Positions 1,034-20,127 of a stretch of 64,000 nt of DNA are shown here, in pieces. The notes under the pieces are model-generated. The model did not search any database. It was not told where the DNA came from and saw only the letters and a list, made by a program, of their open reading frames with translations. The stretch covers positions 62,001 to 126,000 of the IMG/VR virus record IMGVR_UViG_3300044997_001199. One strand, given 5' to 3'. Positions within the stretch are counted from its first letter, which is position 1; each line of letters opens with the position of its first letter. Made by a program: the position numbers and the translations under genes.

Positions 1034-1422
1034 GATACCTCACTCCTGCCGTTGCCGATGTCCCGACTTTTGACATAGATACCTGAATTTTGCATGGCCT
1101 GATCCTGTTCCCAAGTCTCCATGACCACATGTCGACAGACATTTTGAAACCACTGATCTACCACATCCGAATCGGTTTTCCCTGCGTATCCAGCTCTCAA
1201 AAGATTGGCCACAAACTTTTCGTTCCAGTCCAGTTCAAACGCGCCCTGATGAGGATTGGCTGGATCAATGTCCAGTCTCAGTACCGCCACATAGGGCTCG
1301 CCTTGTTCCGTGGCCAATTCTCGGGCAGATTTTGCGGGTTTTTTTGTTTCGTCCCGAGGTTTTTCTTTGGTTTGCTGCGGTTCGCTGATTTTGTTGTTTC
1401 TCCAGAAATCAAATATTCCCAT
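1030..1422 (-). CDS. Hypothetical phage protein
   Basis: Probable start MGIFDFW at 1422, forming a TAATG overlap with the queE stop. Confidence 0.7.
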   Translation of the reverse strand: MGIFDFWRNNKISEPQQTKEKPRDETKKPAKSARELATEQGEPYVAVLRLDIDPANPHQGAFELDWNEKFVANLLRAGYAGKTDSDVVDQWFQNVCRHVVMETWEQDQAMQNSGIYVKSRDIGNGRSEVS

Positions 1423-2276
1423 TATCGTCCCCACCCGTTGCCCCAGATATCTACATGCAGCCGAGGCGAATACCAATGACCTCTGCGCAGAGCCTCGTCG
1501 GCCACATTGATACGATTGTCATCGTACACAGACACCACACCTCCTACCGGCATCACACACACCGGACCTCTAAATCCTGCTGTCCGATATTCTTCCACGG
1601 CTCGATCCACTTCGTCAAAGTCTGCTGTGTGTGCTACCACAAACTTGAGATAGGTCATACCCACAGTTTCGTATTCCACTATGATCTGTGGCTTGATGGC
1701 ATCTTCCCAACGTTCGCCGCTCACTGTGAGTTTTGGGCTCACCGAAAAAGTGATTTCTCTGCGACCCCGACAGGTGGTATTTAGATATCGTCGGAAATCA
1801 TCATGCAACGATTGTGTGCCATTGGTTTCAAATGTGATCTGCTGTAGGTCCTGCATGCGATCATGTTCAAACAATTCCACATAGGCCCGCTGCCATCCCA
1901 GCAACGGTTCCCCGCCAGTGATCACTAGATGCACGGGATTGCCATTGGGTTGCAGCCAGCGATTATTTGGCACGAGCGCCAACATGCGGTCCACGATTTC
2001 GCCAATTTCTAAACTAGGACTAAATTTTTTGAATGCCGGATGCCAGGACGCATAGCTGTCACAGCCAGTGGCCACCAAGGGCAGTTCTTCGAAGGTCTTG
2101 AACTGCACAACATTGGCCGCCACCGCATCGGCCGCGGTACTCATCTGTCCTTTGGGCATACCAAAAGATGAACAAGTGAAATTACATCCAAACGTGCGTA
2201 GGAAAACCGAAGGTACGCCTACGTATCGACCTTCGCCTTGTGCCGAATAAAAAATTTCTGACACCTTGAGTTTCAT
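1422..2276 (-). CDS. queE: 7-carboxy-7-deazaguanine synthase (radical SAM)
   Basis: SEIFYSAQGEG, VFLRTFGCNFTC...CDS, VITGGEPLL, ETNGT, SVSPK and C-terminal SPRLH; clustered with folE and queD. Confidence 0.92.
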   Translation of the reverse strand: MKLKVSEIFYSAQGEGRYVGVPSVFLRTFGCNFTCSSFGMPKGQMSTAADAVAANVVQFKTFEELPLVATGCDSYASWHPAFKKFSPSLEIGEIVDRMLALVPNNRWLQPNGNPVHLVITGGEPLLGWQRAYVELFEHDRMQDLQQITFETNGTQSLHDDFRRYLNTTCRGRREITFSVSPKLTVSGERWEDAIKPQIIVEYETVGMTYLKFVVAHTADFDEVDRAVEEYRTAGFRGPVCVMPVGGVVSVYDDNRINVADEALRRGHWYSPRLHVDIWGNGWGR

Positions 2277-2731
2277 TGTGTAATTATAACATCATTTTCA
2301 GTTTTGATCCAGACTCTGGCTCCACAACTCAATGGCCTGTGGGTAAAGTATTTAACAACCGCAGGCCCTGTGATCTCGACTTCATGCGCGTAGACATTGG
2401 AGTGCCCACTTTTGACTGTGAGCATAGGTTCATCTGAGCTGTTTTTGGTAAAGTAATCATATTCTAATTTACTTTCTCTCAAATTGATTTCATCAACTAT
2501 TGATCTTTGAATAGGGTTATTTTTAGCATATTCTGTTTTGATTTTTTTATCCTCTTCTTTACAATCCCTACAATAGATTTCATATTCGGCCACCGTTATC
2601 TTTGAAATCATTTCTTCAGTTTCGATGACAATGTCAGGAGCCTTTAGTTTTTTCAATCTTTTGACCCTTGCCTGTCTTTCTTCTTGAAACTTTTTATTTC
2701 CACTTATAGTATCTTCAATAATTTCTCTCAT
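2273..2731 (-). CDS. Hypothetical protein, apparently chimeric (AT-rich Lys/Glu N-half plus conserved T4-like phage C-domain)
   Basis: The C-terminal LTVK..SN.YAHEVEI.GP.....PLSCGARVWI segment recalls a small conserved T4-like phage protein; the 5' half is markedly AT-rich. Confidence 0.6.
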   Translation of the reverse strand: MREIIEDTISGNKKFQEERQARVKRLKKLKAPDIVIETEEMISKITVAEYEIYCRDCKEEDKKIKTEYAKNNPIQRSIVDEINLRESKLEYDYFTKNSSDEPMLTVKSGHSNVYAHEVEITGPAVVKYFTHRPLSCGARVWIKTENDVIITQ

Positions 2732-2734
2732 TCT

Positions 2735-2920
2735 TCAACTCCATCTCAGTAGTGTTAGTGTTGCCATCTTAGGATCACGGAACCACCATGAGCAACCATA
2801 GTCAGAGTCCAAGGGACTTAGGTTGTAAGTCCTGCCCCAGTCCCTGCCAAACTCGCCCACATACCGATCTAACCAACGACCAAAGTCAATCTGAGCATCC
2901 ACTAGAAAAACTTGTTTCAA
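2735..2920 (-). CDS. Small hypothetical protein
   Basis: 61-aa ORF filling the gap in operon orientation; Trp-rich, ending WWFRDPKMATLTLLRWS. Confidence 0.55.
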   Translation of the reverse strand: MKQVFLVDAQIDFGRWLDRYVGEFGRDWGRTYNLSPLDSDYGCSWWFRDPKMATLTLLRWS

Positions 2921-2945
2921 TGCTGTGAGTTGGTATTGTTTTCAT

Positions 2946-3656
2946 TTAAAACTCCAGTATCAGATGGCTGCGGTTTCTATAAACACATCGCTGGGCCTGC
3001 GCAGTCCAGGCATCGTAGAGCTCGTCATCGACCAGTCTGCAGTGTTCTTGTTGCTTGGCGTATCTGCCTACCTTGATGGGATGATATTCAACCCAGTTGG
3101 TTATCACAAATCGTCCGTGAAACTCACGCACGATGCGATCCCAGGTTGGGTCAAACAGTTCCTGCTGGATGTGTTCTATGGTATCCACCATGACGATAGT
3201 ATCGTAATTTGCAAAATCAATCTTATCGATCAGGTAATCGATGGATCCAATCAATGGTGATGCGTTTTTGAATTTTTTTCCAAAAAACTGTTTTCCGGTT
3301 TTCGAAAACCAAGTTTTGGAATCCTCACACACTTCAATGCTGGTAACCGGTATCTGCAAATGAGTCAGCACAGCGGCAATTTCGCCGCGACCACCACCTA
3401 TTTCCAACACACCACTGGGATGTCTTGTGGCTGCTGTACGCAAAAAACCAATCTGGTCTTGGAGAACATTTTTGTTGACCACTTCCATACGACCGGTTGG
3501 GTGTATTTCAAAATACCACGGAAATGCGTCCATCAGCTGATCCCAGGTGATGCCATGCATATAACTCAGTGCGGCCATGGTGTCACCAAATTTCAAATTT
3601 CCTGCATGCCAGCTGCGTATGCCGTCGGCCCGAGAAAAATAATCATAATCATACAT
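2946..3656 (-). CDS. Class I SAM-dependent methyltransferase
   Basis: Motif I VLEIGGGRG, acidic residue after strand 2 (SIE), and YDTIVMVDTIEH. Confidence 0.8.
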   Translation of the reverse strand: MYDYDYFSRADGIRSWHAGNLKFGDTMAALSYMHGITWDQLMDAFPWYFEIHPTGRMEVVNKNVLQDQIGFLRTAATRHPSGVLEIGGGRGEIAAVLTHLQIPVTSIEVCEDSKTWFSKTGKQFFGKKFKNASPLIGSIDYLIDKIDFANYDTIVMVDTIEHIQQELFDPTWDRIVREFHGRFVITNWVEYHPIKVGRYAKQQEHCRLVDDELYDAWTAQAQRCVYRNRSHLILEF

Positions 3657-3676
3657 GTTCGTAGTTCCTTGGATCG

Positions 3677-4507
3677 TTAGGTTGAGTGTGGATTGGCGTA
3701 TTGCACCATCTGTCGATTGACGTCATTCTGGGCCAGTTTTTCCCAGGGATCTTGTGTTCCGTTGAACACATTTTCAAAAAAAGTCATGTCCTGGCACAAA
3801 ACTGTGCGTAAATAGGCTGCCAGTTTGTAGCAGTCGCGATATCGAAGATTTATCATTTCCACACTCTGAAAATCTCGCGGATCCTGAGGATTGCCCTCCA
3901 TGATCTTGCGTTCCCGGAATGTGCTGTCACAGTTATTCCCTGTGAGATCATAACGGTCGTGCGTGACCTCGACCGGGATGCGCTCCCAGATATCCAATAC
4001 ATAGGCCTGCTGGCTGAGCCAAGCGTCCTGACTGGGATGCGGACTGATATAACCTGTCAATTCATACCATTTGCTGGGCAGTATTGGAAAGATACTGTAA
4101 GGATGGTCTCTGTGAGTGTGGAACGCCAACAGTTTGAATTCGCCCGAATGCTGCATGATCGTCGAGTCCCATCCCTGGGTTTCCATCACGGCATCGTCGT
4201 TCCACACTATCATCCATTGTGCGGATGCATGTGGTGCTAGGCCGTTGTAGTAGAGATTGAGATGGCTGTAGCCCATGCGGTCAAACACCATGGCACGGTA
4301 ATTGATCTCATGTTGGTCCAGCCATGGCACTATCTGCGAGGTAAAGAAATCGATACCAACGGTGTCGTCGCGATCAAATGCCAGCAAAATCTGCACACGA
4401 TCCGGCACTGCGGCTAGATCAAACAGACTGCGCACACTACGAAACAGAGTTTCTGTGCGCCCGCGCGTGGCCAACAACACTGCTATGTCAAATAAATGCT
4501 GAGACAT
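3677..4507 (-). CDS. GT-A fold glycosyltransferase (GT2-like)
   Basis: N-terminal AVLLATRGR, WNDDA (DxD-like) motif, and downstream QDAW acidic site. Confidence 0.75.
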   Translation of the reverse strand: MSQHLFDIAVLLATRGRTETLFRSVRSLFDLAAVPDRVQILLAFDRDDTVGIDFFTSQIVPWLDQHEINYRAMVFDRMGYSHLNLYYNGLAPHASAQWMIVWNDDAVMETQGWDSTIMQHSGEFKLLAFHTHRDHPYSIFPILPSKWYELTGYISPHPSQDAWLSQQAYVLDIWERIPVEVTHDRYDLTGNNCDSTFRERKIMEGNPQDPRDFQSVEMINLRYRDCYKLAAYLRTVLCQDMTFFENVFNGTQDPWEKLAQNDVNRQMVQYANPHST

Positions 4508-4510
4508 TGG

Positions 4511-5059
4511 TCACTGCCCCGACCGATTCGCAATCGAGCATTCGTAGATGGCCGAATTACCATCATGCTCAAACACTTCGGCTGATCGTAGATGCACACC
4601 TTGTCCCACTGGATACCGCGCTTCAAAGTGTCGACCGTTGGGATGGCACCAGCTGCGACCTTCCTGATATGCGGTCAAGATCTCTGACATGACTTGATAG
4701 GCCAATTCGGCAAATTTTTCGCAACCCACAGCCGAGACAATCCGTAGGTCACAGATACCGCCTTGATCCTGCAGGCCAAGTTTGGCCAGTTCGACGAATT
4801 TTTCAAGATATGGGTCATCCTGAGCGACCACCAGAGTGTGATCGAACTGCCAGTCGGCCCATTCCTTGAAGGCCCTGAGCCCCCCAAAATCCATGACCCA
4901 GTTGCGATTATCCAGAGTTTCAGACTCAAATACCAAGCGTAGACCAATGGAATAGCCGTGCAACAGCGAACAATGGCTGTGAGAGGATCGCCACTGACGA
5001 AAGCAGCAACTCAATCCACGGTCGGTGCCGTAGGTTTTAGTCGAAAGATACTTTGCCAT
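4511..5059 (-). CDS. queD: 6-carboxy-5,6,7,8-tetrahydropterin synthase
   Basis: CSLLHGY (CxxxHG), DFG, FDH, GCE and terminal E-H-x-x-NSA T-fold motifs. Confidence 0.9.
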   Translation of the reverse strand: MAKYLSTKTYGTDRGLSCCFRQWRSSHSHCSLLHGYSIGLRLVFESETLDNRNWVMDFGGLRAFKEWADWQFDHTLVVAQDDPYLEKFVELAKLGLQDQGGICDLRIVSAVGCEKFAELAYQVMSEILTAYQEGRSWCHPNGRHFEARYPVGQGVHLRSAEVFEHDGNSAIYECSIANRSGQ

Positions 5060-5063
5060 TTAA

Positions 5064-5747
5064 TTATCTGTGTCCTTTCATGCTAAGACAAATATCGTAG
5101 AATTCTTGTTTCAGCGCAGGATCAGTTTCGAATGCACCTAGCATGATGGCCGTGGTCATGTCTGATTCGTGCTCACGCACACCGCGCTGAGTCATGCAAT
5201 GATGTTCAGCCTTGACTACCACTGCGACGTTTGAGGTCCGGGCGTATCGTTTGAGTGCCTCTGCTATCTGCGTGGTCATCTCCTCCTGGATCTGCGGACG
5301 TTCACAGATATGATGCACGATGCGATTGAACTTGCTGAGTCCAATGACTTCCTCTTCGGGCACAATGCCCACCCAGCAGTGACCCACGATGTTCTGAAAG
5401 TGATGCGCACATGTGGATCTGATGGTTATGGGTCCGGTGGTATACAGGCTTTTGTATCCCATGTTAGGGAACGCAGTGACCTTGGGCACCGGGCGATAGC
5501 GGCCTGAAAAGGTTTCCATGACAAACATATTGGCCACTCGTCGTGCAGTGTCTCGAGTGTTGTGGTCATGGTCGGTGTCGATCACGAGGCTTTCCAGCAC
5601 ATCTTGCATCTTGGCCGCCACTTCGTCTACCAGTTGTTCCAACTCACCGGGTTGGATAAATTCGGCAATGTTGTCATTGCAATGAAATCGTGCGCCGGCC
5701 ATGTTGATGCGATTGCGAATGGTATTACTAATTTTGGTATAAATCAT
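5064..5747 (-). CDS. folE: GTP cyclohydrolase I
   Basis: STCAHH, GLSKF.R, RPQIQE and H.CM..RG motifs. Confidence 0.95.
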   Translation of the reverse strand: MIYTKISNTIRNRINMAGARFHCNDNIAEFIQPGELEQLVDEVAAKMQDVLESLVIDTDHDHNTRDTARRVANMFVMETFSGRYRPVPKVTAFPNMGYKSLYTTGPITIRSTCAHHFQNIVGHCWVGIVPEEEVIGLSKFNRIVHHICERPQIQEEMTTQIAEALKRYARTSNVAVVVKAEHHCMTQRGVREHESDMTTAIMLGAFETDPALKQEFYDICLSMKGHR

Positions 5748-5787
5748 GCGTTCTCCGAGTTAGGGTCGAGGATGACCAGTTATAGTG

Positions 5788-6387
5788 TTATGATATAGGG
5801 TTTTCCGTGATCTTGCAAGATCTAAGATCGGGATATTGGTGATATTTAGGGACCGGATCAACCCGGGGAAGTTTTTCAAGTCCCATGGCTGCTTCCTCAG
5901 GATTCATTTTGTAGTGGTAGCCCACGTAGAATGTCTGCTGATCTTGCCAGGGCACAATGCTGAGATCGCGCCCGTCGTATCGTTGCAGGCGCAGACGCTG
6001 ATATGCGTCCGGGTCGTCCAGCAGGATCGCACCACCGCGTCCAATTTCCAAAGGTTTGCCGCGTCCAAAACTCACACACTGCATCTGACCAGCACGATAC
6101 ATGCCAGGCGCCAACAGTCGTGCAGAGTCCCAGATCCGAGTGCCATGTATGGGATATTCACCCAGCCACTCGTGGTCGAGATAGGAATATCCGATACTCA
6201 GTTTGTGCATGACCATGGGCACCGACAGATAGGTAAACGCAGTGAATTGTACGTACTCAGGACGTTCGTACCGCAAGCAAAGTTCAAGTGCATGAGTACA
6301 GCAGTCCGTGGCAATGGCAAAAGGCGCACCGGTATAGTCACACAGTGCCTGTTCAAACTGTGCGATGGTGGTAAAGTTTACTTCCAA
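5788..6387 (-). CDS. DegT/DnrJ/EryC1/StrS-family PLP aminotransferase (short form)
   Basis: ATDCCTHALEL, WDSA and SFGRGKPLEIGRGGAI (PLP lysine), GYHYKM; only 199 aa. Confidence 0.8.
   Translation of the reverse strand: MEVNFTTIAQFEQALCDYTGAPFAIATDCCTHALELCLRYERPEYVQFTAFTYLSVPMVMHKLSIGYSYLDHEWLGEYPIHGTRIWDSARLLAPGMYRAGQMQCVSFGRGKPLEIGRGGAILLDDPDAYQRLRLQRYDGRDLSIVPWQDQQTFYVGYHYKMNPEEAAMGLEKLPRVDPVPKYHQYPDLRSCKITENPIS
5790..5818 (-). promoter_or_regulatory. Sigma70-type promoter for folE-queD
   Basis: TTGCAA-17 nt-TATCAT on the minus strand, about 40 nt upstream of the folE ATG; GGAG RBS at 5753-5756. Confidence 0.55.
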
Positions 6388-7328
6388 TGCCAGGCCTGTG
6401 CATGTTCAATGGCGTCGGCCACGGTCCAGCGTGATGCCCAGCCAGCAGTGCGTTTCCACAGGTCAGGATCTGCATAGGATTCAGCTGGATCACCTGTACG
6501 AGCCGGACCATCGATCACAGACACAGCGTGTCCAGTGACCTGCGCGACTAGATCCACGATTTCGCGATTGCTGTGCGCTGTACCAGTGCCCAGGTTGTAG
6601 ATGCCTGCAGGAACCTTGCGATCTATGGCCCGGACGTGTGCGTCGGCGATGTCTTCCACGTGCGTATAATCTCGCACACAGGTACCGTCGCGGGTGTCAA
6701 ATCCCACACCGTTCAAGGTAAATGCACTGCCATCCCGGGCAGCAGCCAACAACCGAGGAATAAGATGCGTGGCACCGGGTTCTTGTCCGTGGCGACCAAG
6801 GTGGTCGGCTCCGCAGGCGTTGAAATATCTAAAGCACACATAGTCCACTGCGTAGGCTCGATGATAGGCCTCAAACAACCATTCTACCATGGCTTTGCTT
6901 TGGCCATACGGGCTCAACGGCATCACAGGGTCAGATTCCCTACAGGGATTGAATTCTGGCTGACCATAGATCGATGAACTGGAACTGAAAACAATGCGTG
7001 TGCCCGGCTGATTGTTACGGATATAATCTACCAAAGTCTTGGTGCGTACAAAATTGTTGTCGTAATACAGTCCCGGGTCAGACACACTGGGCGCGACCAA
7101 ACTGCTGCCTGCACAGTGAATCACGGCGTCGATGTGATGCGAGCCCAGCTGACCCAACGAACTGGCCGCTGCAAAATCTGCTGTGACCGTGGAATCCGCC
7201 ACATTGCGCAGATGGTCGGGCATGGGCCGTTGATCAACAGCCATGGCCCACAGTCCATGGTCCTTGAGGCGCAGCAAGGTCTGTCCGCCAATGAATCCTG
7301 CTGCTCCGGTAATGAGTATTCTTTGCAT
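6378..7328 (-). CDS. galE: UDP-glucose 4-epimerase-like extended SDR
   Basis: GAAGFIG, FSSSSSIYG, YGQSK (YxxxK), RYFNACG and DGTCVRDY motifs. Confidence 0.88.
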   Translation of the reverse strand: MQRILITGAAGFIGGQTLLRLKDHGLWAMAVDQRPMPDHLRNVADSTVTADFAAASSLGQLGSHHIDAVIHCAGSSLVAPSVSDPGLYYDNNFVRTKTLVDYIRNNQPGTRIVFSSSSSIYGQPEFNPCRESDPVMPLSPYGQSKAMVEWLFEAYHRAYAVDYVCFRYFNACGADHLGRHGQEPGATHLIPRLLAAARDGSAFTLNGVGFDTRDGTCVRDYTHVEDIADAHVRAIDRKVPAGIYNLGTGTAHSNREIVDLVAQVTGHAVSVIDGPARTGDPAESYADPDLWKRTAGWASRWTVADAIEHAQAWHWK

Positions 7329-7329
7329 G

Positions 7330-8529
7330 TTAACCCTCGATCTTTCTCACATGATACTTGGCGGCACTGACATGGTCTCTGTAGCGGGGACCGTCTCGCC
7401 GCCATTGTTCGCCTTGCCCCAGCATGATGTCTACACAACGATCCACAGTACCGTCAGTCCAGTCTGAAATCAGGCCCTGATTGTGGTGCGGGTCACGCAA
7501 GAGATTTTGCAATTTGTGGAAGGCATCATCAATGGACCAAGGCACATAGAGTCGGTTGGGATCGTCGGCAAAGGTCTCAGGGAATGAACGATAGGCCGGA
7601 TACAGCACGTTGCAGCCCAGGGTGTCAGCTTCGCTCACTGTATTGCTCACCCAGTCCTGCAGTGCACAGTTGAACAACACTCGGGTATCGTTCAACAGGT
7701 CGTAGTACTGATTCTTGGAAAGACCCTCGTAGATGGTCAAGAGACCGCGTTGTTCGAGCCCACGTGCACGTTCCACATAGCGGGGGTTATTGGAACGCAG
7801 TTCGCTGCCTTGGAACACACAGAATTCCACTCCCACTGGTCCCTGTGCATGGAACATCTCAACAAGGTCCATGTAGAATCCGGGCTGCTTTTCCTGATCC
7901 CAGCGAGCAGCGAATCCTACTCTGCGCGGCCGCTCTGCAAAGGGTCGGACATTGTCGGCGCCACCAATGCGTTCTAGCACTTCTGCCTTGCCGAACGCCA
8001 GGCCTGAAATGTTGTAGATCGGAGCAGTCCAGCCAGCGATACGCATGTGAGCCACCATTTCTTCATTGGTAGCCAACACCGTGGCGAAATCATTGACCAT
8101 GTGTTCGTAGTGCGACATCCAGCGATTCATGCCCCACACATGCACAAAATCATCGGGGTCAATGCTCTGAGCAAGACAGCGCACAAACACCCGCGGCCGC
8201 TGGTTTTCCGGAATCTGGTCCATGATGTAGGGCAGGCTTTCGATGCCCGGCTGGAACATGTCTTCGAAGAAAATCACATCTTGAGCAGTGACTTCTCCTT
8301 GCTGCATGAGTCTCACTAGGTTCATCATCTGGCTCATGCCAAAATAGCTGCGCCCGTGTGCATCCAGTACCTGCCCCACTGAGATCTTCTGCGAGTTGTC
8401 AAGATTGAGTCCGGGTATATAGACCACATCTAGGCCACGACGGTCAAACACGCGCCGGTTCCATTCTGTGAGTTGGAGAGTGTATCGGGCCTCGTACGAT
8501 TCGAGTCCCATGTAATAGAGTTTACGCAT
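7330..8529 (-). CDS. GT-B fold glycosyltransferase
   Basis: C-terminal donor-binding domain: FAARWDQEKQP, then QDWVSNTVSEA..LG (Dx7E-type), YRSFPE. Confidence 0.75.
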   Translation of the reverse strand: MRKLYYMGLESYEARYTLQLTEWNRRVFDRRGLDVVYIPGLNLDNSQKISVGQVLDAHGRSYFGMSQMMNLVRLMQQGEVTAQDVIFFEDMFQPGIESLPYIMDQIPENQRPRVFVRCLAQSIDPDDFVHVWGMNRWMSHYEHMVNDFATVLATNEEMVAHMRIAGWTAPIYNISGLAFGKAEVLERIGGADNVRPFAERPRRVGFAARWDQEKQPGFYMDLVEMFHAQGPVGVEFCVFQGSELRSNNPRYVERARGLEQRGLLTIYEGLSKNQYYDLLNDTRVLFNCALQDWVSNTVSEADTLGCNVLYPAYRSFPETFADDPNRLYVPWSIDDAFHKLQNLLRDPHHNQGLISDWTDGTVDRCVDIMLGQGEQWRRDGPRYRDHVSAAKYHVRKIEG

Positions 8530-9406
8530 GATTTTTTTTCTCCAATAAAGTCGCTAACTGCATGGTATCAGTGGGGAACCGGTTTAGATCTTGGCATTGT
8601 ATTTCGTATCCACGATCCCTCAATCGTTTTTGAACAATAGCTTCACTGACAAAACACAACGAAGACCACGTAAAGTTTTTGGAATTTACAGTAAAATCAA
8701 CGATAGTATCAATCAATTCGAACTCATTGACAATATATGTTTGTGCTGCCTGCCATTCTTCTACGAAACTATTTAGATCACCTTGCAGCTCTAGTTCGCA
8801 AAAACTAATTATGCGCTCCAAGCTCGCAACAGTATCGTACAATATATCAGTGTTGGACATGATCAACCATGAATCATCGACATGCTTTGGACAATCAATG
8901 AATTCCTGTACTGACCCCGGATAGAACAAGCTGAACCATTCGCGAGCTTGCCACGGTTCTAGATCCGACCAATGTTTGCAATGAGAATTCCACTTTTTCC
9001 AATTGTCGATGTGATCGCCATACATGGCATCTAGAGACAACGGCAACCACATTTTGTAATATTTAAAAAGAAGATTTAACTCAGCAGCATGTAGGTTGGG
9101 TTGATAGACCACTATCTTGTGATCAGTTGCCCAGGAAGTCACGGTAGAAAAATATTCTAGCAACTGAGGCAATTTGAATTCACAATACGTGAGACCCGGT
9201 GTGGTAATTCCCGACGGGTTGAGGGCCTGATCCAGGAATTCTCTCAACTGATCCATGTTCATGACATGATACTCTTTGTCAAAAGAGTGCATAGATCCGT
9301 CGGGCATGATTCGTGCATTTATTTTTTGTGGATGATTGGTGTAGTTGTGTAGCACATACTCAATGGTGCTGCCAAAACTACCCGGATCATAGAACACATG
9401 TATCAA
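8522..9406 (-). CDS. P-loop/sulfotransferase-like hypothetical protein
   Basis: Likely TTG start at 9406 (overlaps upstream stop); N-terminal HVFYDPGSFGST; more AT-rich than its neighbours. Confidence 0.55.
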   Translation of the reverse strand: MIHVFYDPGSFGSTIEYVLHNYTNHPQKINARIMPDGSMHSFDKEYHVMNMDQLREFLDQALNPSGITTPGLTYCEFKLPQLLEYFSTVTSWATDHKIVVYQPNLHAAELNLLFKYYKMWLPLSLDAMYGDHIDNWKKWNSHCKHWSDLEPWQAREWFSLFYPGSVQEFIDCPKHVDDSWLIMSNTDILYDTVASLERIISFCELELQGDLNSFVEEWQAAQTYIVNEFELIDTIVDFTVNSKNFTWSSLCFVSEAIVQKRLRDRGYEIQCQDLNRFPTDTMQLATLLEKKNHA

Positions 9407-9624
9407 GTACGAGATCCTGTGCGGCGAACAAGGTCGGCCCATGAATCTTTGGCATTTTTTCCTTGTTGCAGTTTGTTGAATTGCTGGAAAGCATAGCTCT
9501 TCCAGTTGTAAAGATCTGCTTCGTTGTACACATATCCATAATTTCGGCAGAAGTCGAGATATTTTTCGAGATCATCAAGAATGATACGAACCTTGGGGTT
9601 GGGTTGAAACTTTTGCTTGGACAA
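9403..9624 (-). CDS. Small hypothetical protein
   Basis: 73-aa ORF with GGAG RBS, co-oriented within the cluster. Confidence 0.7.
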   Translation of the reverse strand: MSKQKFQPNPKVRIILDDLEKYLDFCRNYGYVYNEADLYNWKSYAFQQFNKLQQGKNAKDSWADLVRRTGSRT

Positions 9625-9636
9625 TTTATGTCTCCG

Positions 9637-10080
9637 TTAGATTACAAGAGATTGACTAGGACGAGTACTGTTGTACTCAATGGAACACCCATTTTCGTCA
9701 TCTTCACTGACTTCAATGTGAACATCGCGACCGGGATACCGCGCAGAGATTTGTATATACAAATCATCGGCAATCATTTCACAACTACGATGGTTGAGTT
9801 CTAAAAGGTTTTTACTATACAAGGATTCAAGCCAGCGTTTGAACTGGATAAATTCGATGTCTCGGTCGTTGTGCCACACACTGATTGACACCCTGAAATG
9901 AAAAATATGGCGATGAGGATGAGCAAGAAACGAAACATCGTCGGGGCCTCCGGTGGCCAGTTGAGGATCTGTTGCAGCAGCAGGATAGCAGTGTATGCCT
10001 TCCTTTTGAAAAGTCACCCAGATTTTACGCTGGGCTACTTGTTTGATACGTTCTGCAGTTTCGCGTTGGTGTTGGTTCAT
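9637..10080 (-). CDS. dpdL: QueD-paralog T-fold protein, DpdL-like (putative CDG decarboxylase)
   Basis: LAHPHRHIF matches the LxxxHRHxF signature that replaces QueD CxxxHGH; also SCEM and VSED..NG. Confidence 0.7.
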   Translation of the reverse strand: MNQHQRETAERIKQVAQRKIWVTFQKEGIHCYPAAATDPQLATGGPDDVSFLAHPHRHIFHFRVSISVWHNDRDIEFIQFKRWLESLYSKNLLELNHRSCEMIADDLYIQISARYPGRDVHIEVSEDDENGCSIEYNSTRPSQSLVI

Positions 10081-10607
10081 TTGATTACCTTGTCGTACTT
10101 GTATTGATCCCAGGATGTGAATTGCCGACGATCCATGAGGTCATGAAGCTCATGACACCACACACCGGGATTGGTTGCCTCGAAATCTCGATCATCCAAT
10201 TTGATCACAGCATTGTATCCCAACAACCCTATGTGAGGTAATTTAACTGAGATCATGGGCACAAATCTAGGCGATTCGGTAAGACTGGTCTCGGCCAGGC
10301 CTTCCACGCAGTCAACATCAAGATCCAGAGTGCACCAATAGCCTCGTTCCAGCAGAACCTGGACCATGGACTCCCACTGATGCCAGGCCGTGTCTGCAAA
10401 TACCAACCGCGGAAAACTGTGATTGGCACCGAAATACACATGTCTGATCGGGCTGGCTGCGGCCCGATCATGTTCTCCGATCTTCCATAGGATTTTTTCT
10501 GGGTCTTGCAGCCCGATCACAAACAGTGTACGGTGCCCACGCACAGGCGAATGTTCGATTTCGTCGCCCACAAAAAATTCAACGTCATTGTGTCCTGGTC
10601 GGTTCAT
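10077..10607 (-). CDS. Hypothetical protein translationally coupled between dpdA and dpdL
   Basis: 4-nt overlaps on both sides; G.EIE, HVYFGANHSF and N.GVW motifs; function unknown. Confidence 0.75.
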   Translation of the reverse strand: MNRPGHNDVEFFVGDEIEHSPVRGHRTLFVIGLQDPEKILWKIGEHDRAAASPIRHVYFGANHSFPRLVFADTAWHQWESMVQVLLERGYWCTLDLDVDCVEGLAETSLTESPRFVPMISVKLPHIGLLGYNAVIKLDDRDFEATNPGVWCHELHDLMDRRQFTSWDQYKYDKVIK

Positions 10608-12124
10608 ACGCTGTTTTCCAATTCATCTAGCAGTTGTTGATCAAATTCTTCATCTGGTAAATCTGTGTTGTTGGTATCAAACAGCAGATCAAACTGCGGC
10701 CTTGACGACCACACTCGTTTGCCCGTGAAGCCTCGTGTGCCTACAATTCTTTCCCATATTTTAGCATGATCATCTATGATTTGCAACGACTTTGTTCGAT
10801 CCTGCTCTGCAAACACTCGATCAATGATTCGAGCTGCATCAAGATCGGGGTCAGTGGGATGTAGCAACATATTAGGCGCTGTGCCCGAATCAAAACATCG
10901 ATTGGCTCGTTGTACCGATTCGAGGTGCATCCATACATTGTGTCCCATGAGCAAGGCGTAGCTGAACGAGTCCCACGACGTGCGACCTTCCTTGCCGATC
11001 TTGTTGAGATCACCGGGACAGTAGATACAGACATCGGAAATTTTCAATCGCGAGGAAATCGGAGAGTCTTCGAAATCGGGATGTATGAGATCCTGCCTCA
11101 CAGCATCTCCAAACGATCTTGAGTCCGTGGCATAGCGTTTGTCGTCGGCTGTGGGCGCCATCTGATAACTCCATTTGCCACGATGCGGAGTCAGGATGCT
11201 GTGATAGAGCTGGCCGTTGGCTGTGGCCAAGAACGGGCTAGCACAATCAAAACTCACAGTGAAGTTGGCGTTGTGATATTGACGCACTGCACGTTGTACC
11301 GCAGTCAAAAACACTGCCCATTCCAGGCGCGAAGTGCCCAGGAAGTGCATCCAGTCATGCACTCCGGTTTCCAACAACCCATCGTGTATCAAGGTCACTA
11401 TACGGCGCAGAACCAAGTGCGCGTCGCACATGTTCTGTCCGCCCATGCCCCAGCCATCGAAATGATTGGAGTGACGGCTGGGATCCGAAAAATGTTTCAT
11501 GGTGTCATACCAGTGATCGGCTTCGGCATGATTGCCGCCCTGCAGCACATTGAGTATCTTGGTAGAACCATGGCGATTGGCCACCCAGTAGTTGTTGTTG
11601 TATTCCGTGGCCCGCACTGCATCGTCATAACTGTGAATTCCAGATGCCGCAGCGGCCCGGGGATCACGGAAAGTCCAGGTGGGTATGTCCATGGTCATGC
11701 CGTAGGTAGCAATGCCCATCTGCCAGTCCAGGACCTGTGCTCGTCTTTTTTCTGCATCGCGGTCTGTGGGGTCAGCCCAGCGGCCTGGCCACACGCCCTT
11801 GGCAATCTGGAAACCGCCCGAATCTGCAAGTATGATCGAGCTGGGATCTCGATTGCGTATCATGTCTTCTTTGGGATCGGCCTTGGCAAGGTCGAGATTG
11901 GCATGTCCAGCCGAATACAGGCTCCAGCGATAAGGAAACAGACTCTGCTGCGGATTCAACCAGTTCATGGACTCCATGTCGGGTATGCCCGCGGGCATGC
12001 GCGCCGATTCCACATAGGCAGCGGTGCGCTGACGACCTATGTAACTGGAATAAAACGAACTGATCGCAGGTAGAAAAATCGCGTAGTCATTCTGTTTGGC
12101 AGCGAGATTGTCTTGTTTAGGCAC
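10604..12124 (-). CDS. dpdA: DNA guanine transglycosylase (TGT/DpdA-like)
   Basis: TGT motifs DSGGFQ, MDIP, NVLQG, GMGG, HFLG and SFDCASP; lies beside deazapurine biosynthesis and DNA replication genes. Confidence 0.85.
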   Translation of the reverse strand: MPKQDNLAAKQNDYAIFLPAISSFYSSYIGRQRTAAYVESARMPAGIPDMESMNWLNPQQSLFPYRWSLYSAGHANLDLAKADPKEDMIRNRDPSSIILADSGGFQIAKGVWPGRWADPTDRDAEKRRAQVLDWQMGIATYGMTMDIPTWTFRDPRAAAASGIHSYDDAVRATEYNNNYWVANRHGSTKILNVLQGGNHAEADHWYDTMKHFSDPSRHSNHFDGWGMGGQNMCDAHLVLRRIVTLIHDGLLETGVHDWMHFLGTSRLEWAVFLTAVQRAVRQYHNANFTVSFDCASPFLATANGQLYHSILTPHRGKWSYQMAPTADDKRYATDSRSFGDAVRQDLIHPDFEDSPISSRLKISDVCIYCPGDLNKIGKEGRTSWDSFSYALLMGHNVWMHLESVQRANRCFDSGTAPNMLLHPTDPDLDAARIIDRVFAEQDRTKSLQIIDDHAKIWERIVGTRGFTGKRVWSSRPQFDLLFDTNNTDLPDEEFDQQLLDELENSV

Positions 12125-12263
12125 TGATATCTCTTCGGCTAAGATGGTTCAAGATCTCAAATTGTTCCCAGGCCGCCTGCAGAGCGGGATTGTCACGCAT
12201 GCCCTGTTCTCTTTGATGGTCCTTGTGCATGCGTTGCAATGAGTTTTTTAACGAGTCAATCAT
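12117..12263 (-). CDS. 48-aa hypothetical protein
   Basis: Manual translation MIDSLKNSLQRMH...NPALQAAWEQFEIL; TAATG overlap with the clamp stop. Confidence 0.5.
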   Translation of the reverse strand: MIDSLKNSLQRMHKDHQREQGMRDNPALQAAWEQFEILNHLSRRDISA

Positions 12264-12985
12264 TATTTGCTCTGTGCCGGAAGAGTATAGTGGTACACCG
12301 CGATGCCAGAGTCCACGGTGATCTGAGCTGCACCTTCGTCAGAAATGCGCATAGTCTTGTCACCGGTCAGAGACAGGATACTGAGAACCTGCGCAACTGG
12401 CCATGACCAGGTTCGCCGCAGCGTTCCCTCGACACTGGGCTGGAACACAAAATTGCCAGCATGCGTGGAATGATCGCCAAAGTAGAATTTTAGATCACCG
12501 TTCTCGGTACGTGCCTGGAACGTGGGTTCTTCGGCATTGGCCTGTGCCTGCATGCGCAGACGTTGTATCGCGGCCACTGTGGGTTCAAACTCCAGGTGCC
12601 AGTTGGCTCCTTTGAACCGTGCGGTCTTGAGTTTTTCGTTGACGATTTCGGCAGCCATGAAACGATAACTGTTGCGGAAGTCACCGGCAGCATTGCGAAA
12701 GTTTACTCCATCGGGCACACCTGTGTCCTTGCGGGTGAGAGTGAGTTCTGCATCCTCGCGATATTCAGGCAAGTTCAACAGGATCTTGAGTTTGTTGAGA
12801 TTCGGCATGCCAAATGTGCCGATGAATTCGGGCACAGGATTCTTGAATTCTCCTTGTACTACCACTGACACATCTTCGGCTAAACCGTTGATCTGTGTTC
12901 TGCTATCATCACCTATGATTTTTACTAGATCAATACAGCCCAGATCGTGGGTATGTTCCACTAGATCTAACAGATAATCACGCAT
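12263..12985 (-). CDS. Sliding clamp (gp45/PCNA-like)
   Basis: 240-aa two-domain beta/alpha pattern, GTFGMPNL and terminal Y.Y.LPA; close to DNA polymerase. Confidence 0.65.
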   Translation of the reverse strand: MRDYLLDLVEHTHDLGCIDLVKIIGDDSRTQINGLAEDVSVVVQGEFKNPVPEFIGTFGMPNLNKLKILLNLPEYREDAELTLTRKDTGVPDGVNFRNAAGDFRNSYRFMAAEIVNEKLKTARFKGANWHLEFEPTVAAIQRLRMQAQANAEEPTFQARTENGDLKFYFGDHSTHAGNFVFQPSVEGTLRRTWSWPVAQVLSILSLTGDKTMRISDEGAAQITVDSGIAVYHYTLPAQSK

Positions 12986-13023: not shown

Positions 13024-13983
13024 TTATTTAGACTTGGGTATGATTTTGGCCAAAGTTTGTGCACCTCGCATGCTGGCCATTGTTCCGGGGCGGCGCAGTT
13101 CCAGCCAAGCACAGTCTGCACTGCCGTGATAGTGTTCCAGTACCTCGTAGCCTTGCAGTTGTGCCTGATCTCTTACCCGACTGCCCGGGGTGTAACACAT
13201 GAACGAGCGTTCGGCCAGGCCGGCGCCATGTACCCAGTCGCAGTCATTCAAGGTCATCAGCAGGATGCCCCCGGGTCTCAGATGCTGCCAGATTTCCCGG
13301 AGATAGCGTTCGATCAGCTCGATGGGGCGGAAGTTGAAAAAATTATAGGCAAACACATAGCCAAATTGTTCGCTGGGCAACTGAGACAATATGGCCTGAT
13401 CGCTGCGGTCATCGATCACATAGCATCGCATGCGTCGTTGATATTCTGCAGGAAATCTTTCTTGTGACGGTTTCAGTAGATCAGGGTGCTGATCCACCAC
13501 ATAGAGAGGATCAAGCGCGACGAGATGGTCAATCCAGGGTTCCGCTCCGGGACGTATGATCATGCCGGGCACTCGCCAGTCCGAGTATGTCAGGATCTTT
13601 GCATGCAACCGGTCACGATCTGCGAGCTCGATGTCAAGGCGACGTGACAGTATGTAATCGACGGTTTCGTACTTCATTTCGTCTGTAAACAAACGACGGC
13701 TGCGTTCGTAATAGATTGGTTGTTGTTGTTCGATCAGTTCATCCACGGCCCGACGCAGGTAAGAAACACTGTGGCAGAAGTTTTCCATTGCATCGGTCAG
13801 AACTTGTTGCGCGCCGATCACACGACTGTTGTTTTTTTTAAAACGTACATGCGGGTTTTCTGTGGCCGCATGTACCACTCCGCTCAGCATGTGTTGTAGA
13901 TGTGCCGACACCGACACCAAATCTATGGCGTCGAGTTCGTTGCGATAGCGCACTAGATCGCTGAGTGGTGGTGCTGGTTTCAT
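13024..13983 (-). CDS. Methyltransferase-like protein with N-terminal helical region
   Basis: C-terminal FGYVFAYNFF...LRPGG.L class I MTase pattern; motif I is degenerate (IIRPGAE). Confidence 0.6.
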   Translation of the reverse strand: MKPAPPLSDLVRYRNELDAIDLVSVSAHLQHMLSGVVHAATENPHVRFKKNNSRVIGAQQVLTDAMENFCHSVSYLRRAVDELIEQQQPIYYERSRRLFTDEMKYETVDYILSRRLDIELADRDRLHAKILTYSDWRVPGMIIRPGAEPWIDHLVALDPLYVVDQHPDLLKPSQERFPAEYQRRMRCYVIDDRSDQAILSQLPSEQFGYVFAYNFFNFRPIELIERYLREIWQHLRPGGILLMTLNDCDWVHGAGLAERSFMCYTPGSRVRDQAQLQGYEVLEHYHGSADCAWLELRRPGTMASMRGAQTLAKIIPKSK

Positions 13984-16999: not shown

Positions 17000-17028
17000 A
17001 TTGTAAACTAGTGCCTTGGTATTGTCAA
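17000..17028 (-). promoter_or_regulatory. Sigma70 promoter for the replication genes
   Basis: TTGACA-17 nt-TACAAT on the minus strand. Confidence 0.8.
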
Positions 17029-19086: not shown

Positions 19087-20127
19087 ATGCTGAAGTTATC
19101 ACAGATACGTCGGGTGCATGTGGAACTGACCACTCGATGCAATGCACGGTGTCCCATGTGTCCTCGGAACTATCGAGGCTATGACTACAATAGCGGTTAT
19201 CCCACAACCGAACTCACTGTGCACGATTTCAGGCACATATTCACACCGGAGTTTTTATCGCAACTTCATCCACCACCGCCGAAGGTATATTCCAATGGAC
19301 ATGTCAAACAAGACTTCCAATTCTATGGCATAAATTTCAACGGCAATCTCGGTGACTTCAGCCTGGCCCAGGATGGCAAAGAAATTGTGCAATATGTGGT
19401 GTCTCATGACGTGGCCGTAAACATAACCACCAACGGACACGCACGAAATGCCGAGTGGTGGCGCGGTCTGGCACATTCCAAGGTCACTGTGGGGTTCGCT
19501 CTGGACGGTCTGGCTGACACACACGCCTTGTATCGCCAGGACACGGACTGGAATCGAGTGATTGCCAATGCCAGTGCCTATATCTCCGCAGGGGGTCGAG
19601 CCATATGGCGATTCATACCCTTTGACCACAATCGACACCAGGAGCAGCAGTGCCAACAGCTGGCCCAGGACCTGGGATTTGAGAGATTTGAAAATATCTA
19701 CGACGGACGGGATCGTGGTCCGGTATACACACGAACCGGAGAATTCAGTCATTGGATCGGTCCGGTGGGAGAACCCGAGAAGTATATCCCTCACGTGAAA
19801 GATCTGTTAGAGAGTCATCGAACTTGGTTCAACATCGAAAAGGATACCAGGGAACTTAACATCGTGTGTGAACACAAACGTCAACGAGAAATCTATGTCG
19901 CAGCTGACGGATCGGTATGGCCCTGTTGTTTTCTTGGCTATTACCCCGGGCAGATGCATCATGCTGGCAACGATCAATTGTTGCCTTTGATTCACGAAAA
20001 CAATGCGCTGAAATATGATCTGTCACACTGCATGCAGTGGTTTGACCGTGTGGAACAAACCTGGCAACAAGACAGCATCGCCAACGGTCGTCTGTATCAT
20101 TGCGTGAACAGTTGTAACCGAGTCTAA
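19087..20127 (+). CDS. Radical SAM protein with SPASM/twitch domain
   Basis: CNARCPMC (CX3CX2C), GNLGD, TNG, and C-terminal C...DGSVWPCC...C..SC. Confidence 0.9.

Follow-up and report, generated by a model that had tools for sequence, protein, structure and literature searches.

A predicted 7-deazaguanine DNA-modification locus with a linked glycosyltransferase in an uncultured jumbo phage

Does a phage that appears to exchange guanine for 7-deazaguanine in its DNA also attach a sugar to the modified base? This question is raised by a gene run in a large uncultured phage, located in a 64,000-nucleotide window (the whole stretch of DNA that was analysed) of the 215-kb IMG/VR jumbo-phage contig IMGVR_UViG_3300044997_001199. 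A sequence-only reading of the window had proposed, from a glycosyltransferase and a UDP-sugar epimerase placed among deazaguanine genes, that the base is glycosylated. To our knowledge, a sugar has not been reported on any purine-type base in DNA, and no paper on glycosylated deazaguanine in DNA was found.

To establish whether the locus is genuine, we first examined its gene content and organisation. All genes listed in the sequence-only reading exist, co-oriented on the minus strand between positions 1422 and 12124. Six junctions overlap: those of dpdA with the 176-aa gene, of the 176-aa gene with dpdL and of a 152-aa ORF with queE by 4 bp each, that of the 73-aa gene with the 306-aa gene by 40 bp, that of the 306-aa gene with the GT-B gene by 8 bp, and that of galE with the aminotransferase gene by 10 bp. 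Most remaining gaps measure 1–40 bp, with the exception of 214 bp before the 152-aa ORF. No strong terminator lies inside the run. The best sigma-70-like promoter match (TTGACA, 17-nt spacer, TACAAT; 11 of 12 matches; 17000–17028, minus strand) lies upstream of polB and is a possible start of one long transcription unit running through the locus, although it is a consensus match only. The gene order is conserved in 79 further IMG/VR loci and in MAG contigs, and is therefore not a chance arrangement.

The run follows a family B DNA polymerase of 886 aa (13980–16640, minus strand; Pfam DNA_pol_B and DNA_pol_B_exo1; phrog_262, E 4.8e-190; median 78% identity in relatives). Two genes, rather than the single clamp gene implied by the sequence-only reading, separate polB from dpdA, both on the minus strand. 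One encodes a fast-evolving 319-aa protein (13024–13983; 22–51% identity in relatives) with a weak class I methyltransferase domain (Methyltransf_11, 12 and 25, E 1e-5 to 5e-4), which is not the clamp. The other encodes a conserved 240-aa protein (12263–12985; phrog_12062, unknown function), which clusters with PA5oct gp314 and with a Phosso gene annotated as sliding clamp beta. This protein is possibly the sliding clamp, but it had no PDB sequence hit and the label is not otherwise confirmed.

We next asked whether the locus encodes a complete route to 7-deazaguanine. FolE, GTP cyclohydrolase I (227 aa; 5064–5747, minus strand), was identified by Pfam (E 1.7e-45) and phrog_2197 (E 6e-52). The QueD-like CPH4 synthase (182 aa; 4511–5059, minus strand) was identified by Pfam PTPS (E 7e-13) and phrog_2389 (E 3e-31), and carries CSLLHGY in place of CxxxHGH. 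QueE, the radical-SAM CDG synthase (284 aa; 1422–2276, minus strand), was supported by phrog_2076 (E 2.7e-51), partial NCBIfam QueE hits and a Pfam Radical_SAM hit below threshold, and has a long insert between the cluster cysteines. The 147-aa DpdL (9637–10080, minus strand) is a QueD-like T-fold protein and the proposed CDG decarboxylase. It matches phrog_17812 (E 2.8e-35), its LAHPHRHIF motif fits the published LxxxHRHxF (PMC10516641), and it is 34% identical to phiST DpdL and 51–63% identical to the PA5oct, ACP17 and Phosso proteins. No QueC, QueF, Gat or YhhQ was found: a PP-loop motif scan of six frames was negative, and tblastn with the phage proteins gave nothing in the window or in 87 related loci.

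The transglycosylase could be confirmed by fold only. The 506-aa protein (10604–12124, minus strand; GTG start) had no Pfam, PHROG, NCBIfam or PDB sequence hit. However, its AF2 model (pLDDT 91, pTM 0.89) returned only TGT, DpdA 7ui4 or archaeosine TGT as the 15 best Foldseek PDB hits (E from 1.7e-6, probability 1.0). D101-S-G-G, H260, G263 and D293 are invariant, and more than 7,600 metagenomic homologues were found. We therefore consider it a divergent member of the TGT/DpdA superfamily.

Three further proteins lie between dpdA and the glycosyltransferase gene, all on the minus strand. The 176-aa protein (10077–10607) is of unknown function and had no library hit. It is present in 67 related loci, and in ACP17 next to its DpdA, but showed no relation to the Phosso 'glycosylase', PA5oct gp320 or the BUDD 143-aa protein. 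The 73-aa protein (9403–9624) likewise had no library hit and was found in 43 related loci at 51–69% identity. The 306-aa protein (8522–9442), previously labelled a P-loop protein, has no Walker A motif and no hit in any library. With homologues in only 2 of 79 related loci, it is a variable insert rather than a core member.

The 399-aa GT-B protein (7330–8529, minus strand) is a GT4-like glycosyltransferase. Its Pfam Glyco_trans_1_2 hit is weak and below threshold, but its profile hits WlaC, RfaG and CapJ in the PDB. The AF2 model (pLDDT 76, pTM 0.80) has six low-confidence stretches; nevertheless, Foldseek found SPS, SenB, PimA, BshA, MshA and WaaG at E about 1e-10, with 285 hits at E <= 1e-3. 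R209, K214, E300 and E318 are invariant even in ACP17 and BUDD. No T4 glucosyltransferase appears among the 50 best structural matches.

To evaluate whether this enzyme is linked to the deazaguanine genes, we examined its distribution. The GT-B is present in 47 of 47 relatives with enough flanking sequence, at a median 283 bp downstream of DpdL, and is as conserved as the polymerase (median 77% against 78% identity, with DpdA at 70%). In MAG contigs it remains 66–78% identical where DpdA drops to 37–58%. Homologues sit beside DpdL in eleven lineages, seven of them cultured phage groups on several unrelated backbones. Every homologue found in cultured phages (BUCT-ZZ01, BUDD/X1, ACP17, BCSR5, PA5oct gp317 and Phosso) lies inside a deazaguanine cluster beside DpdL, and at least three different DpdA types accompany them. 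The GT-B follows DpdL rather than any one DpdA type. In contrast, the five DpdL lineages without it (phiST, Ahp1, D479, Bakedbeans and RHph_I1_18) all carry DpdA3. One of these, phiST, contains plain dDG (PMC10516641), and the GT-B is therefore not needed to make DG. Vibrio phage 2.275.O, which has the same 506-type DpdA with QueC/QueF genes, has neither DpdL nor the GT-B.

The remaining sugar genes, all on the minus strand, behave differently, in that they form a clade-specific cassette rather than a core. The first is a GalE-like UDP-hexose 4-epimerase (316 aa; 6378–7328; Pfam Epimerase E 5.8e-53), which scores 262.1 bits with TIGR01179 against a cut-off of 262.3 and contains GxxGxxG, a Ser run and YxxxK, with no dehydratase-type motif. 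It is followed by a 199-aa DegT-like PLP protein (5788–6387), listed in the sequence-only reading as an aminotransferase. This protein lacks the C-terminal domain (Pfam DegT 71.8 bits, covering the profile only up to position 239 of 360). K111 in SFGxxK and D87 are invariant, and the short length is conserved at 192–215 aa in relatives, so it is not a fresh pseudogene. The GT-A and methyltransferase labels rest on weak evidence. The probable GT-A (GT2-like; 276 aa; 3677–4507) has a phrog_14945 glycosyltransferase hit (E 3.7e-9), an N-terminal Rossmann-like start and an NDD motif, but no Pfam or PDB hit, and was found in 13 related loci. The class I SAM methyltransferase-like protein (236 aa; 2946–3656) scores 26.5 bits with Methyltransf_23 against a cut-off of 27, carries an LEIGGGRGE motif (GxGxG type) and has homologues in two related loci. 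Between it and queE lies a 152-aa ORF of unknown function (2273–2731; phrog_8676, E 9.4e-12 over the C-terminal 55 residues) that the sequence-only reading omitted. In five related loci GalE is replaced by other SDR enzymes, and directly after the GT-B relatives also carry a full-length DegT, a class I/II aminotransferase, a TPP enzyme and a B12-radical SAM enzyme.

Taken together, these comparisons support the inference that the base is glycosylated, and we assign a probability of roughly 0.55 to the following pathway, the product of which is inferred, without chemical data for any GT-B-carrying phage. FolE, QueD and QueE convert GTP to 7-carboxy-7-deazaguanine (CDG), as follows from established pathway knowledge. 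DpdL is proposed to remove the carboxyl group to give 7-deazaguanine (DG), a proposal that rests on phiST; the reaction has never been shown in vitro. The 506-aa DpdA would then exchange guanine in phage DNA for DG, as inferred from its fold and catalytic motifs, and the GT-B would transfer a hexose-type sugar from a nucleotide sugar onto the deazaguanine, as inferred from gene linkage. We favour transfer onto dDG already in DNA, with the electron-rich C7 in the major groove as the most plausible acceptor, giving a C-glycoside; glycosylation of the free base before its insertion is nearly as likely. However, DG has no hydroxyl group, and a C-, N- or O6-glycoside made by a GT4-type enzyme, which normally retains configuration and glycosylates oxygen, would be unprecedented. 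The GT-B family is also acidic (pI 5.2–6.2), and its nearest solved structures glycosylate small molecules or lipids rather than DNA. GalE, the short DegT-like protein, the GT-A and the methyltransferase would supply or elaborate the sugar, although the aminotransferase is truncated and GalE alone does not provide a 4-keto sugar for it.

The reverse order, in which the GT-B glycosylates free DG, or CDG before decarboxylation, and DpdA inserts the pre-glycosylated base much as eukaryotic TGT inserts the bulky base queuine, is the strongest alternative but remains tentative. DpdL, predicted to act on the free base, sits directly upstream of the GT-B almost everywhere, and the closest structures (BshA, MshA, SenB, LmbT, PimA, SPS) use small-molecule or lipid acceptors, and the GT-B family is acidic. 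Expression of ACP17 DpdL plus DpdA in E. coli gave no dDG, and the authors suggested that further enzymes are needed, which this order would explain; yet the phiST DpdL/DpdA pair also failed in E. coli, so the negative result does not discriminate between the two orders. Moreover, at least three unrelated DpdA types would each have to accept a base carrying a sugar, and known phage DNA glycosylations, probably including that of T4, occur on the polymer (PMC13326640). It is less likely that the GT-B is merely an accessory factor, such as a structural partner or the source of a transient glycosyl intermediate, that helps transglycosylases other than DpdA3 to make or insert DG and leaves plain dDG or dCDG in the DNA, with the downstream sugar genes serving another purpose. 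The GT-B is indeed present exactly where DpdL is combined with DpdA types other than DpdA3, bacterial DpdA appears to need a partner, DpdB, and PA5oct, ACP17 and BUDD have no obvious sugar-nucleotide genes next to their GT-B. On the other hand, the donor-binding and catalytic residues are invariant across 23–80% identity, which argues for a working glycosyltransferase, and a sugar-tailoring cassette that sits immediately after the GT-B and varies between close relatives is hard to explain if no sugar is delivered. Phages without their own sugar genes can use host UDP-glucose.

We consider it doubtful that the glycosyltransferases and sugar genes act on something else, such as a virion or host protein, a cell-envelope polymer or a hydroxylated pyrimidine, and lie here only because of conserved synteny in the replication region. 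Within the clade, polB, the 240-aa protein and other unrelated genes are just as syntenic, phage-encoded GT4-like enzymes of other function are common, and, as only 64 of 215 kb was inspected, a hydroxymethyl- or hydroxy-pyrimidine pathway elsewhere in the genome cannot be excluded. However, the DpdL/GT-B pairing recurs on several unrelated backbones that share little else (T4-like cyanophage BUCT-ZZ01, ACP17, Xanthomonas, Burkholderia and Sinorhizobium jumbo phages, and PA5oct), and tblastn and profile searches of phage records found no GT-B family member outside a deazaguanine cluster. Least likely is that the locus makes a free deazapurine glycoside, resembling a nucleoside antibiotic, or modifies tRNA. 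Deazapurine nucleoside antibiotics probably start from the same FolE/QueD/QueE route, and the TGT fold alone does not distinguish tRNA from DNA substrates. Nevertheless, the locus sits in the replication module directly after polB in many lineages, phiST DNA contains dDG, and DpdA-family proteins in phages with these pathways have been tied to DNA modification (PMC10516641, PMC6884629).

The most plausible interpretation is thus a DpdL-type 7-deazaguanine DNA-modification module extended by a glycosylation branch, in which the sugar probably differs between relatives, as these carry other tailoring enzymes. PA5oct DNA resists enzymes with G-containing sites and is targeted by nucleases that sense hypermodified DNA (PMC12191111). 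The modification most likely protects phage DNA from nucleases that recognise G-containing sites.

Between 1422 and 12124, fourteen ORFs lie head to tail on the minus strand. Six junctions overlap, by 4, 4, 4, 8, 10 and 40 bp, and most other gaps are 1-40 bp. No convincing terminator was found inside the run, and the best promoter-like site in the region is located upstream of the B-family polymerase, at 17028-17000. The window is part of IMGVR_UViG_3300044997_001199, a 215,330-bp viral contig. A megablast search of the locus against 50,697 phage records gave no match, so that no cultured phage is similar at the DNA level. Other window ORFs hit clamp loaders, PhoH, an endolysin, tail-fibre proteins and a ClpA/ClpB-type double AAA+ chaperone (30419-32695, minus strand), as well as DnaJ, Fe/Mn superoxide dismutase, ferritin, two NT5C 5'-nucleotidases and a kinase. 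A 346-aa radical SAM protein with a SPASM domain (19087-20127, plus strand; CxxxCxxC at 19138) lies on the opposite strand to its neighbours and is not obviously tied to the deazaguanine genes. Further along, at 53968-56619 (minus strand; repeats at 54511-54816), a near-identical peptide-coding unit recurs three times within about 300 nt of an 883-aa ORF, and a nearby 423-aa protein (60478-61749, plus strand) has a glycine-rich domain. These are probably fibre or receptor-binding genes with tandem repeats. Between polB and the probable clamp, all relatives carry a fast-evolving 319-aa protein (13024-13983, minus strand in the window) with a weak SAM-methyltransferase domain and 22-51% identity. 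PDB searches with this protein and with the 240-aa 'clamp' found nothing.

The enzymes for the synthesis of CDG are all present. FolE (5064-5747) and QueD (4511-5059) pass the Pfam thresholds, while QueE (1422-2276) matches the phage QueE family phrog_2076 at E 2.7e-51, but gives only partial or sub-threshold hits in Pfam and NCBIfam. QueD reads CSLLHGY where the textbook motif is CxxxHGH. Among close relatives (related loci L003-L081), FolE comes in two xenologous forms, at 34-38% or 83-88% identity to the window's FolE, which indicates gene replacement inside an otherwise conserved module. The 147-aa protein (9637-10080) hits phrog_17812 and carries LAHPHRHIF, which fits the LxxxHRHxF signature used to define DpdL, the proposed CDG decarboxylase, in place of the CxxxHGH of QueD (Cui et al. 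2023, PMC10516641). By tblastn it is 34% identical to phiST DpdL over 80% of the query (E 2e-8), it is 51-63% identical to homologues in PA5oct, ACP17 and Phosso, and DpdL forms one cluster across 16 lineages. No frame of the window contains a PP-loop SGGxDS motif, and tblastn with phage QueC, QueF, Gat and YhhQ proteins found nothing in the window or in 87 related loci. The pathway therefore stops at CDG or DG, as the sequence-only reading had stated.

The 506-aa protein (10604-12124) has no hit in Pfam, PHROGs, NCBIfam or PDB sequences, and none of 57 diverse family members hits Pfam TGT (PF01702) either. A profile of the family against the PDB reached TGT only at E about 1.5, although in the correct register. 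Its identity therefore rests on the predicted fold. An AlphaFold model built on 57 sequences of 26-42% identity has pLDDT 91 and pTM 0.89, and its 15 best Foldseek PDB matches are all tRNA-guanine transglycosylases, the bacterial DNA preQ0 insertase DpdA (7ui4) or archaeosine TGT, with probability 1.0 and E values of 1.7e-6 to 1.5e-4, but with TM-scores of only 0.4-0.55. The invariant residues are D101-S-G-G, P148, H260, G263 and D293, and the window protein reads DSGGFQ. By our own comparison with TGT motifs, these correspond to the DSGG catalytic loop, the LG motif and the nucleophile Asp. No cysteine is invariant or nearly invariant in the family alignment and the window protein has only a CxxC, so the TGT zinc site (CxCxxC...H) is not kept. 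Compared with bacterial DpdA, the Z. mobilis TGT and phage DpdA1 and DpdA2, the protein has about 100 extra residues. It is distantly related to the DpdA of ACP17 (HMM E 4.4e-9), which is in turn related to the DpdA2 of phage nt-1 (PMC6884629), and only remotely to phiST DpdA3 (hhalign probability 74% over 82 columns). We regard it as a further DpdA subfamily. The family is very large: at least 7,666 proteins match in the 90%-clustered collection, none with a Pfam domain, on contigs of up to 350 kb, and there are 876 clusters at 50% identity. That base exchange takes place on DNA rather than tRNA is supported only by context, namely the position next to polB and the restriction resistance of PA5oct DNA.

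The 399-aa protein (7330-8529) has only a weak Pfam hit (16.9 bits against a cut-off of 25). However, a profile of its family hits Campylobacter WlaC (E 0.0054), RfaG, CapJ and other group-1 glycosyltransferases in the PDB. Its model, which was built with IMG/VR sequences only, at the cost of alignment diversity and model confidence (pLDDT 76, pTM 0.80), gives 285 PDB matches at E <= 1e-3, led by the GT4-type enzymes sucrose-phosphate synthase, SenB, PimA, BshA, MshA and WaaG. BFVD matches are annotated 'glycosyl transferase family 1'. Residues R209, K214, E300 and E318 are invariant across 30 sequences, including the 24-26% identical ACP17 and BUDD proteins. By our own motif comparison they lie at the positions of GT4 donor-binding residues, although the two Glu residues are 17 positions apart, so this is not a literal EX7E. 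Neither T4 AGT nor BGT is among the 50 best structural matches.

Within the clade, this predicted GT-B enzyme is a core member of the module. All 47 IMG/VR relatives with at least 6.5 kb downstream of dpdA have the full gene, at a median 283 bp after dpdL. Its median identity is 77%, compared with 78% for polB, 70% for DpdA and 68% for DpdL. In eight MAG-binned contigs it stays 66-78% identical, while DpdA falls to 37-58%. Phage contigs of this clade (L097-L104), one of them 183 kb, are binned into MAGs named Haliscomenobacter, Chitinophagales, Rickettsiales, Phycisphaerae and others, which is either mis-binning or a weak hint about the host.

To ask whether the GT-B is linked to DpdL beyond the clade, we performed tblastn and profile searches. 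Homologues were found in Synechococcus phage BUCT-ZZ01 (67% identity), Xanthomonas phages BUDD and X1, Acidovorax phage ACP17, Burkholderia phage BCSR5, Pseudomonas jumbo phage PA5oct (gp317), Sinorhizobium phage Phosso and four further IMG/VR loci, in every case inside a FolE/QueD/QueE cluster and within about 3 kb of DpdL. IMG/VR scans with a single protein found only ACP17 itself and four BUDD-like loci. The phages with GT-B homologues, on several unrelated backbones, use at least three different transglycosylases: the 506-aa type (window, PA5oct, Phosso), the nt-1-like DpdA2 type (ACP17, BUDD, BUCT-ZZ01; for ACP17 inferred from similarity to nt-1) and a separate DSGGFQ protein in BCSR5. 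The latter, a 446-aa ORF after the BCSR5 GT-B (locus L090, 16214-17554), has DSGGFQ and HVLGV motifs but no significant BLAST similarity to BUDD's DpdA, and may be yet another divergent transglycosylase. An XGPRT-like phosphoribosyltransferase sits in many related deazaguanine clusters (loci L019, 20658-21206; L031, 19955-20494; L032, L064, L098 and L102; PA5oct, L001, 15946-16377; BUCT-ZZ01, L082, 7093-7554) but is absent from the window. It could recycle the guanine released by DpdA, or it could make a deazaguanine nucleotide.

The five DpdL lineages without the GT-B near DpdL are phiST, Ahp1, D479, Bakedbeans and RHph_I1_18, and all carry the phiST gp042 (DpdA3) family. phiST DNA contains plain dDG in place of all G (PMC10516641). 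These DpdA3 phages tend to carry a kinase-like gene beside or near DpdA3 (phiST, L087, 10299-10796; D479, L091, 13549-14094; Ahp1, L089, 13346-13915; Bakedbeans, L088, 20004-20588), and phiST also has a MazG, which may point to a nucleotide-level route in that group. In Vibrio phage Bakedbeans, DpdL is the C-terminal part of a 383-aa fusion protein, gp176 (11212-12363). Vibrio phage 2.275.O has the 506-type DpdA (HMM E 1e-94) with QueF, QueC, Gat and a YhhQ-like transporter, but neither DpdL nor the GT-B. Together with the DpdA2-type carriers, this phage led us to reject the idea that the GT-B is tied to one particular DpdA family. In these comparisons the GT-B is never seen without DpdL, and it is not needed to make DG. 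The simplest reading is that it acts after DpdL, on DG or on dDG.

The remaining sugar genes form a variable cassette. The GalE-like protein (6378-7328) has the epimerase motifs (GxxGxxG, a Ser run and YxxxK) and, at 262.1 bits against 262.3, sits 0.2 bits under the TIGR01179 equivalog cut-off. The DegT-like protein (5788-6387) scores 71.8 bits against a Pfam cut-off of 19.8 and keeps the PLP lysine (invariant K111 in SFGxxK), but at 199 aa it lacks the C-terminal domain, the match ending at profile position 239 of 360. Because the short length, seen in 36 relatives, and the key residues are conserved, we rejected the possibility that it is a fresh pseudogene. The GT-A (3677-4507) and methyltransferase (2946-3656) assignments both rest on weak hits plus motifs. 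At the same position, close relatives carry other SDR epimerase/dehydratases, a full-length DegT, a class I/II aminotransferase, a thiamine-diphosphate enzyme and a B12-binding radical SAM enzyme. Such a pattern, a fixed transferase with exchangeable sugar-tailoring genes, resembles what O-antigen loci appear to show, and the phage arabinosyl-5-hydroxycytosine system likewise pairs DNA glycosyltransferases with phage-encoded sugar-nucleotide genes (PMC13326640). It argues that a sugar is delivered and that its identity is under diversifying pressure. The 306-aa protein (8522-9442), labelled a P-loop protein in the sequence-only reading, has no supported function, gave no hit in any library or PDB search and occurs in only two other loci. 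The 176-aa protein, which also gave no hit, is conserved in the clade and in ACP17, and hhalign of its family against the Phosso 'glycosylase', PA5oct gp320 and the BUDD 143-aa protein showed no relation.

Compared with the phiST-type dDG system (FolE, QueD, QueE, DpdL, DpdA3; PMC10516641), the locus shares the CDG route without QueC, the DpdL family and the position next to the polymerase. However, phiST uses the small DpdA3 and has no GT-B or sugar genes, and its product is plain dDG, whereas a further sugar is predicted here. A cultured relative, PA5oct (Wroclawvirus), has the same module next to polB, with gp316 DpdA-like (35% identity), gp317 GT-B-like (HMM E 1.5e-43), gp318 DpdL (57%) and QueE, but no GalE, aminotransferase or GT-A cassette nearby. 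The T4 alpha- and beta-glucosyltransferases are also nucleotide-sugar-dependent GT-B enzymes encoded beside base-modification genes. They decorate a major-groove position of 5-hydroxymethylcytosine after the modified base is in DNA, with a sugar pattern that varies among relatives, but their acceptor is a hydroxyl group on a pyrimidine, and DG has none. In RB69 and DLP3, which carry arabinosylated 5-hydroxycytosine (PMC13326640), the phage encodes both DNA glycosyltransferases and its own nucleotide-sugar biosynthesis genes, glycosylation occurs on DNA and the sugars are diverse across relatives. There the sugar is attached to a pyrimidine through an ether to a ring hydroxyl made by a ThyA homologue. 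No such hydroxylase is seen in this locus, although its absence from the window is not established. Galactosyl- and mannosyl-queuosine in vertebrate tRNA appear to be the only known natural glycosylated 7-deazaguanine derivatives, made by one GT-A-type and one GT-B-type enzyme (QTGAL and QTMAN) with UDP-Gal and GDP-Man. In that case the substrate is RNA, and the sugar goes onto the cyclopentenediol hydroxyl of queuosine, a side chain that this pathway cannot make because it lacks QueC, QueF and QueA.

The conversion of GTP to CDG by FolE, QueD and QueE follows from established knowledge, and the conversion of CDG to DG by DpdL is a published proposal. We infer that DpdA inserts DG into DNA and that the GT-B then adds a sugar, most plausibly at C7 in the major groove, the one reactive position that decarboxylation exposes, while the cassette supplies or extends the sugar. 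In support, PA5oct DNA resists G-site restriction enzymes and is attacked by nucleases that sense hypermodified DNA (PMC12191111), and ACP17 DpdL plus DpdA gave no dDG in E. coli. Glycosylation of the free base before insertion is almost as likely, being favoured by the DpdL/GT-B adjacency, the small-molecule GT4 structural neighbours and the acidic pI, although net charge and pI cannot decide between a DNA and a free-base acceptor, because the DpdA is acidic too. Against a glycosylated product stand the absence of chemical data for any carrier, the lack of a hydroxyl acceptor on DG and the absence of T4-type DNA glucosyltransferases among the 50 best structural matches, and only 64 of 215 kb was inspected. 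The sequence-only reading, which proposed that the base is further glycosylated, is confirmed in its observations with minor corrections and supported in its interpretation as far as comparative genomics can go. Phages that combine DpdL with this GT4-like enzyme may carry a glycosylated 7-deazaguanine in their DNA, most simply a sugar C-linked to C7 of dDG, a reading to which we tentatively assign a probability of roughly 0.45.

Literature searches found no report of a glycosylated deazaguanine in DNA, the DpdL paper does not mention this partner (PMC10516641) and the PA5oct genome paper says nothing about DNA modification. The DpdL/DpdA pair of ACP17 prompted its authors to ask whether other enzymes are needed, and a conserved third partner is a concrete candidate for that missing component. 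Similarly, the nature of the 'modified G' in PA5oct-like therapy phages, which are targeted by END nucleases, has not been reported in the papers found, and this locus gives a specific prediction for it. A DNA glycosyltransferase for purine-type bases, with exchangeable sugars, would be a useful tool for labelling DNA and for studying evasion of restriction and CRISPR systems.

All natural sugar-bearing DNA bases known so far are pyrimidines with a hydroxyl handle. A glycosylated deazapurine would be the first sugar-bearing purine-type base in any DNA, adding a new class of hypermodified base and probably a glycosyltransferase chemistry not yet described for DNA, with the sugar diversified between close relatives by swappable nucleotide-sugar cassettes. 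The 506-aa transglycosylase family, which matches none of the sequence libraries searched and has thousands of metagenomic members, points to a large unannotated reservoir of guanine-modifying phages.
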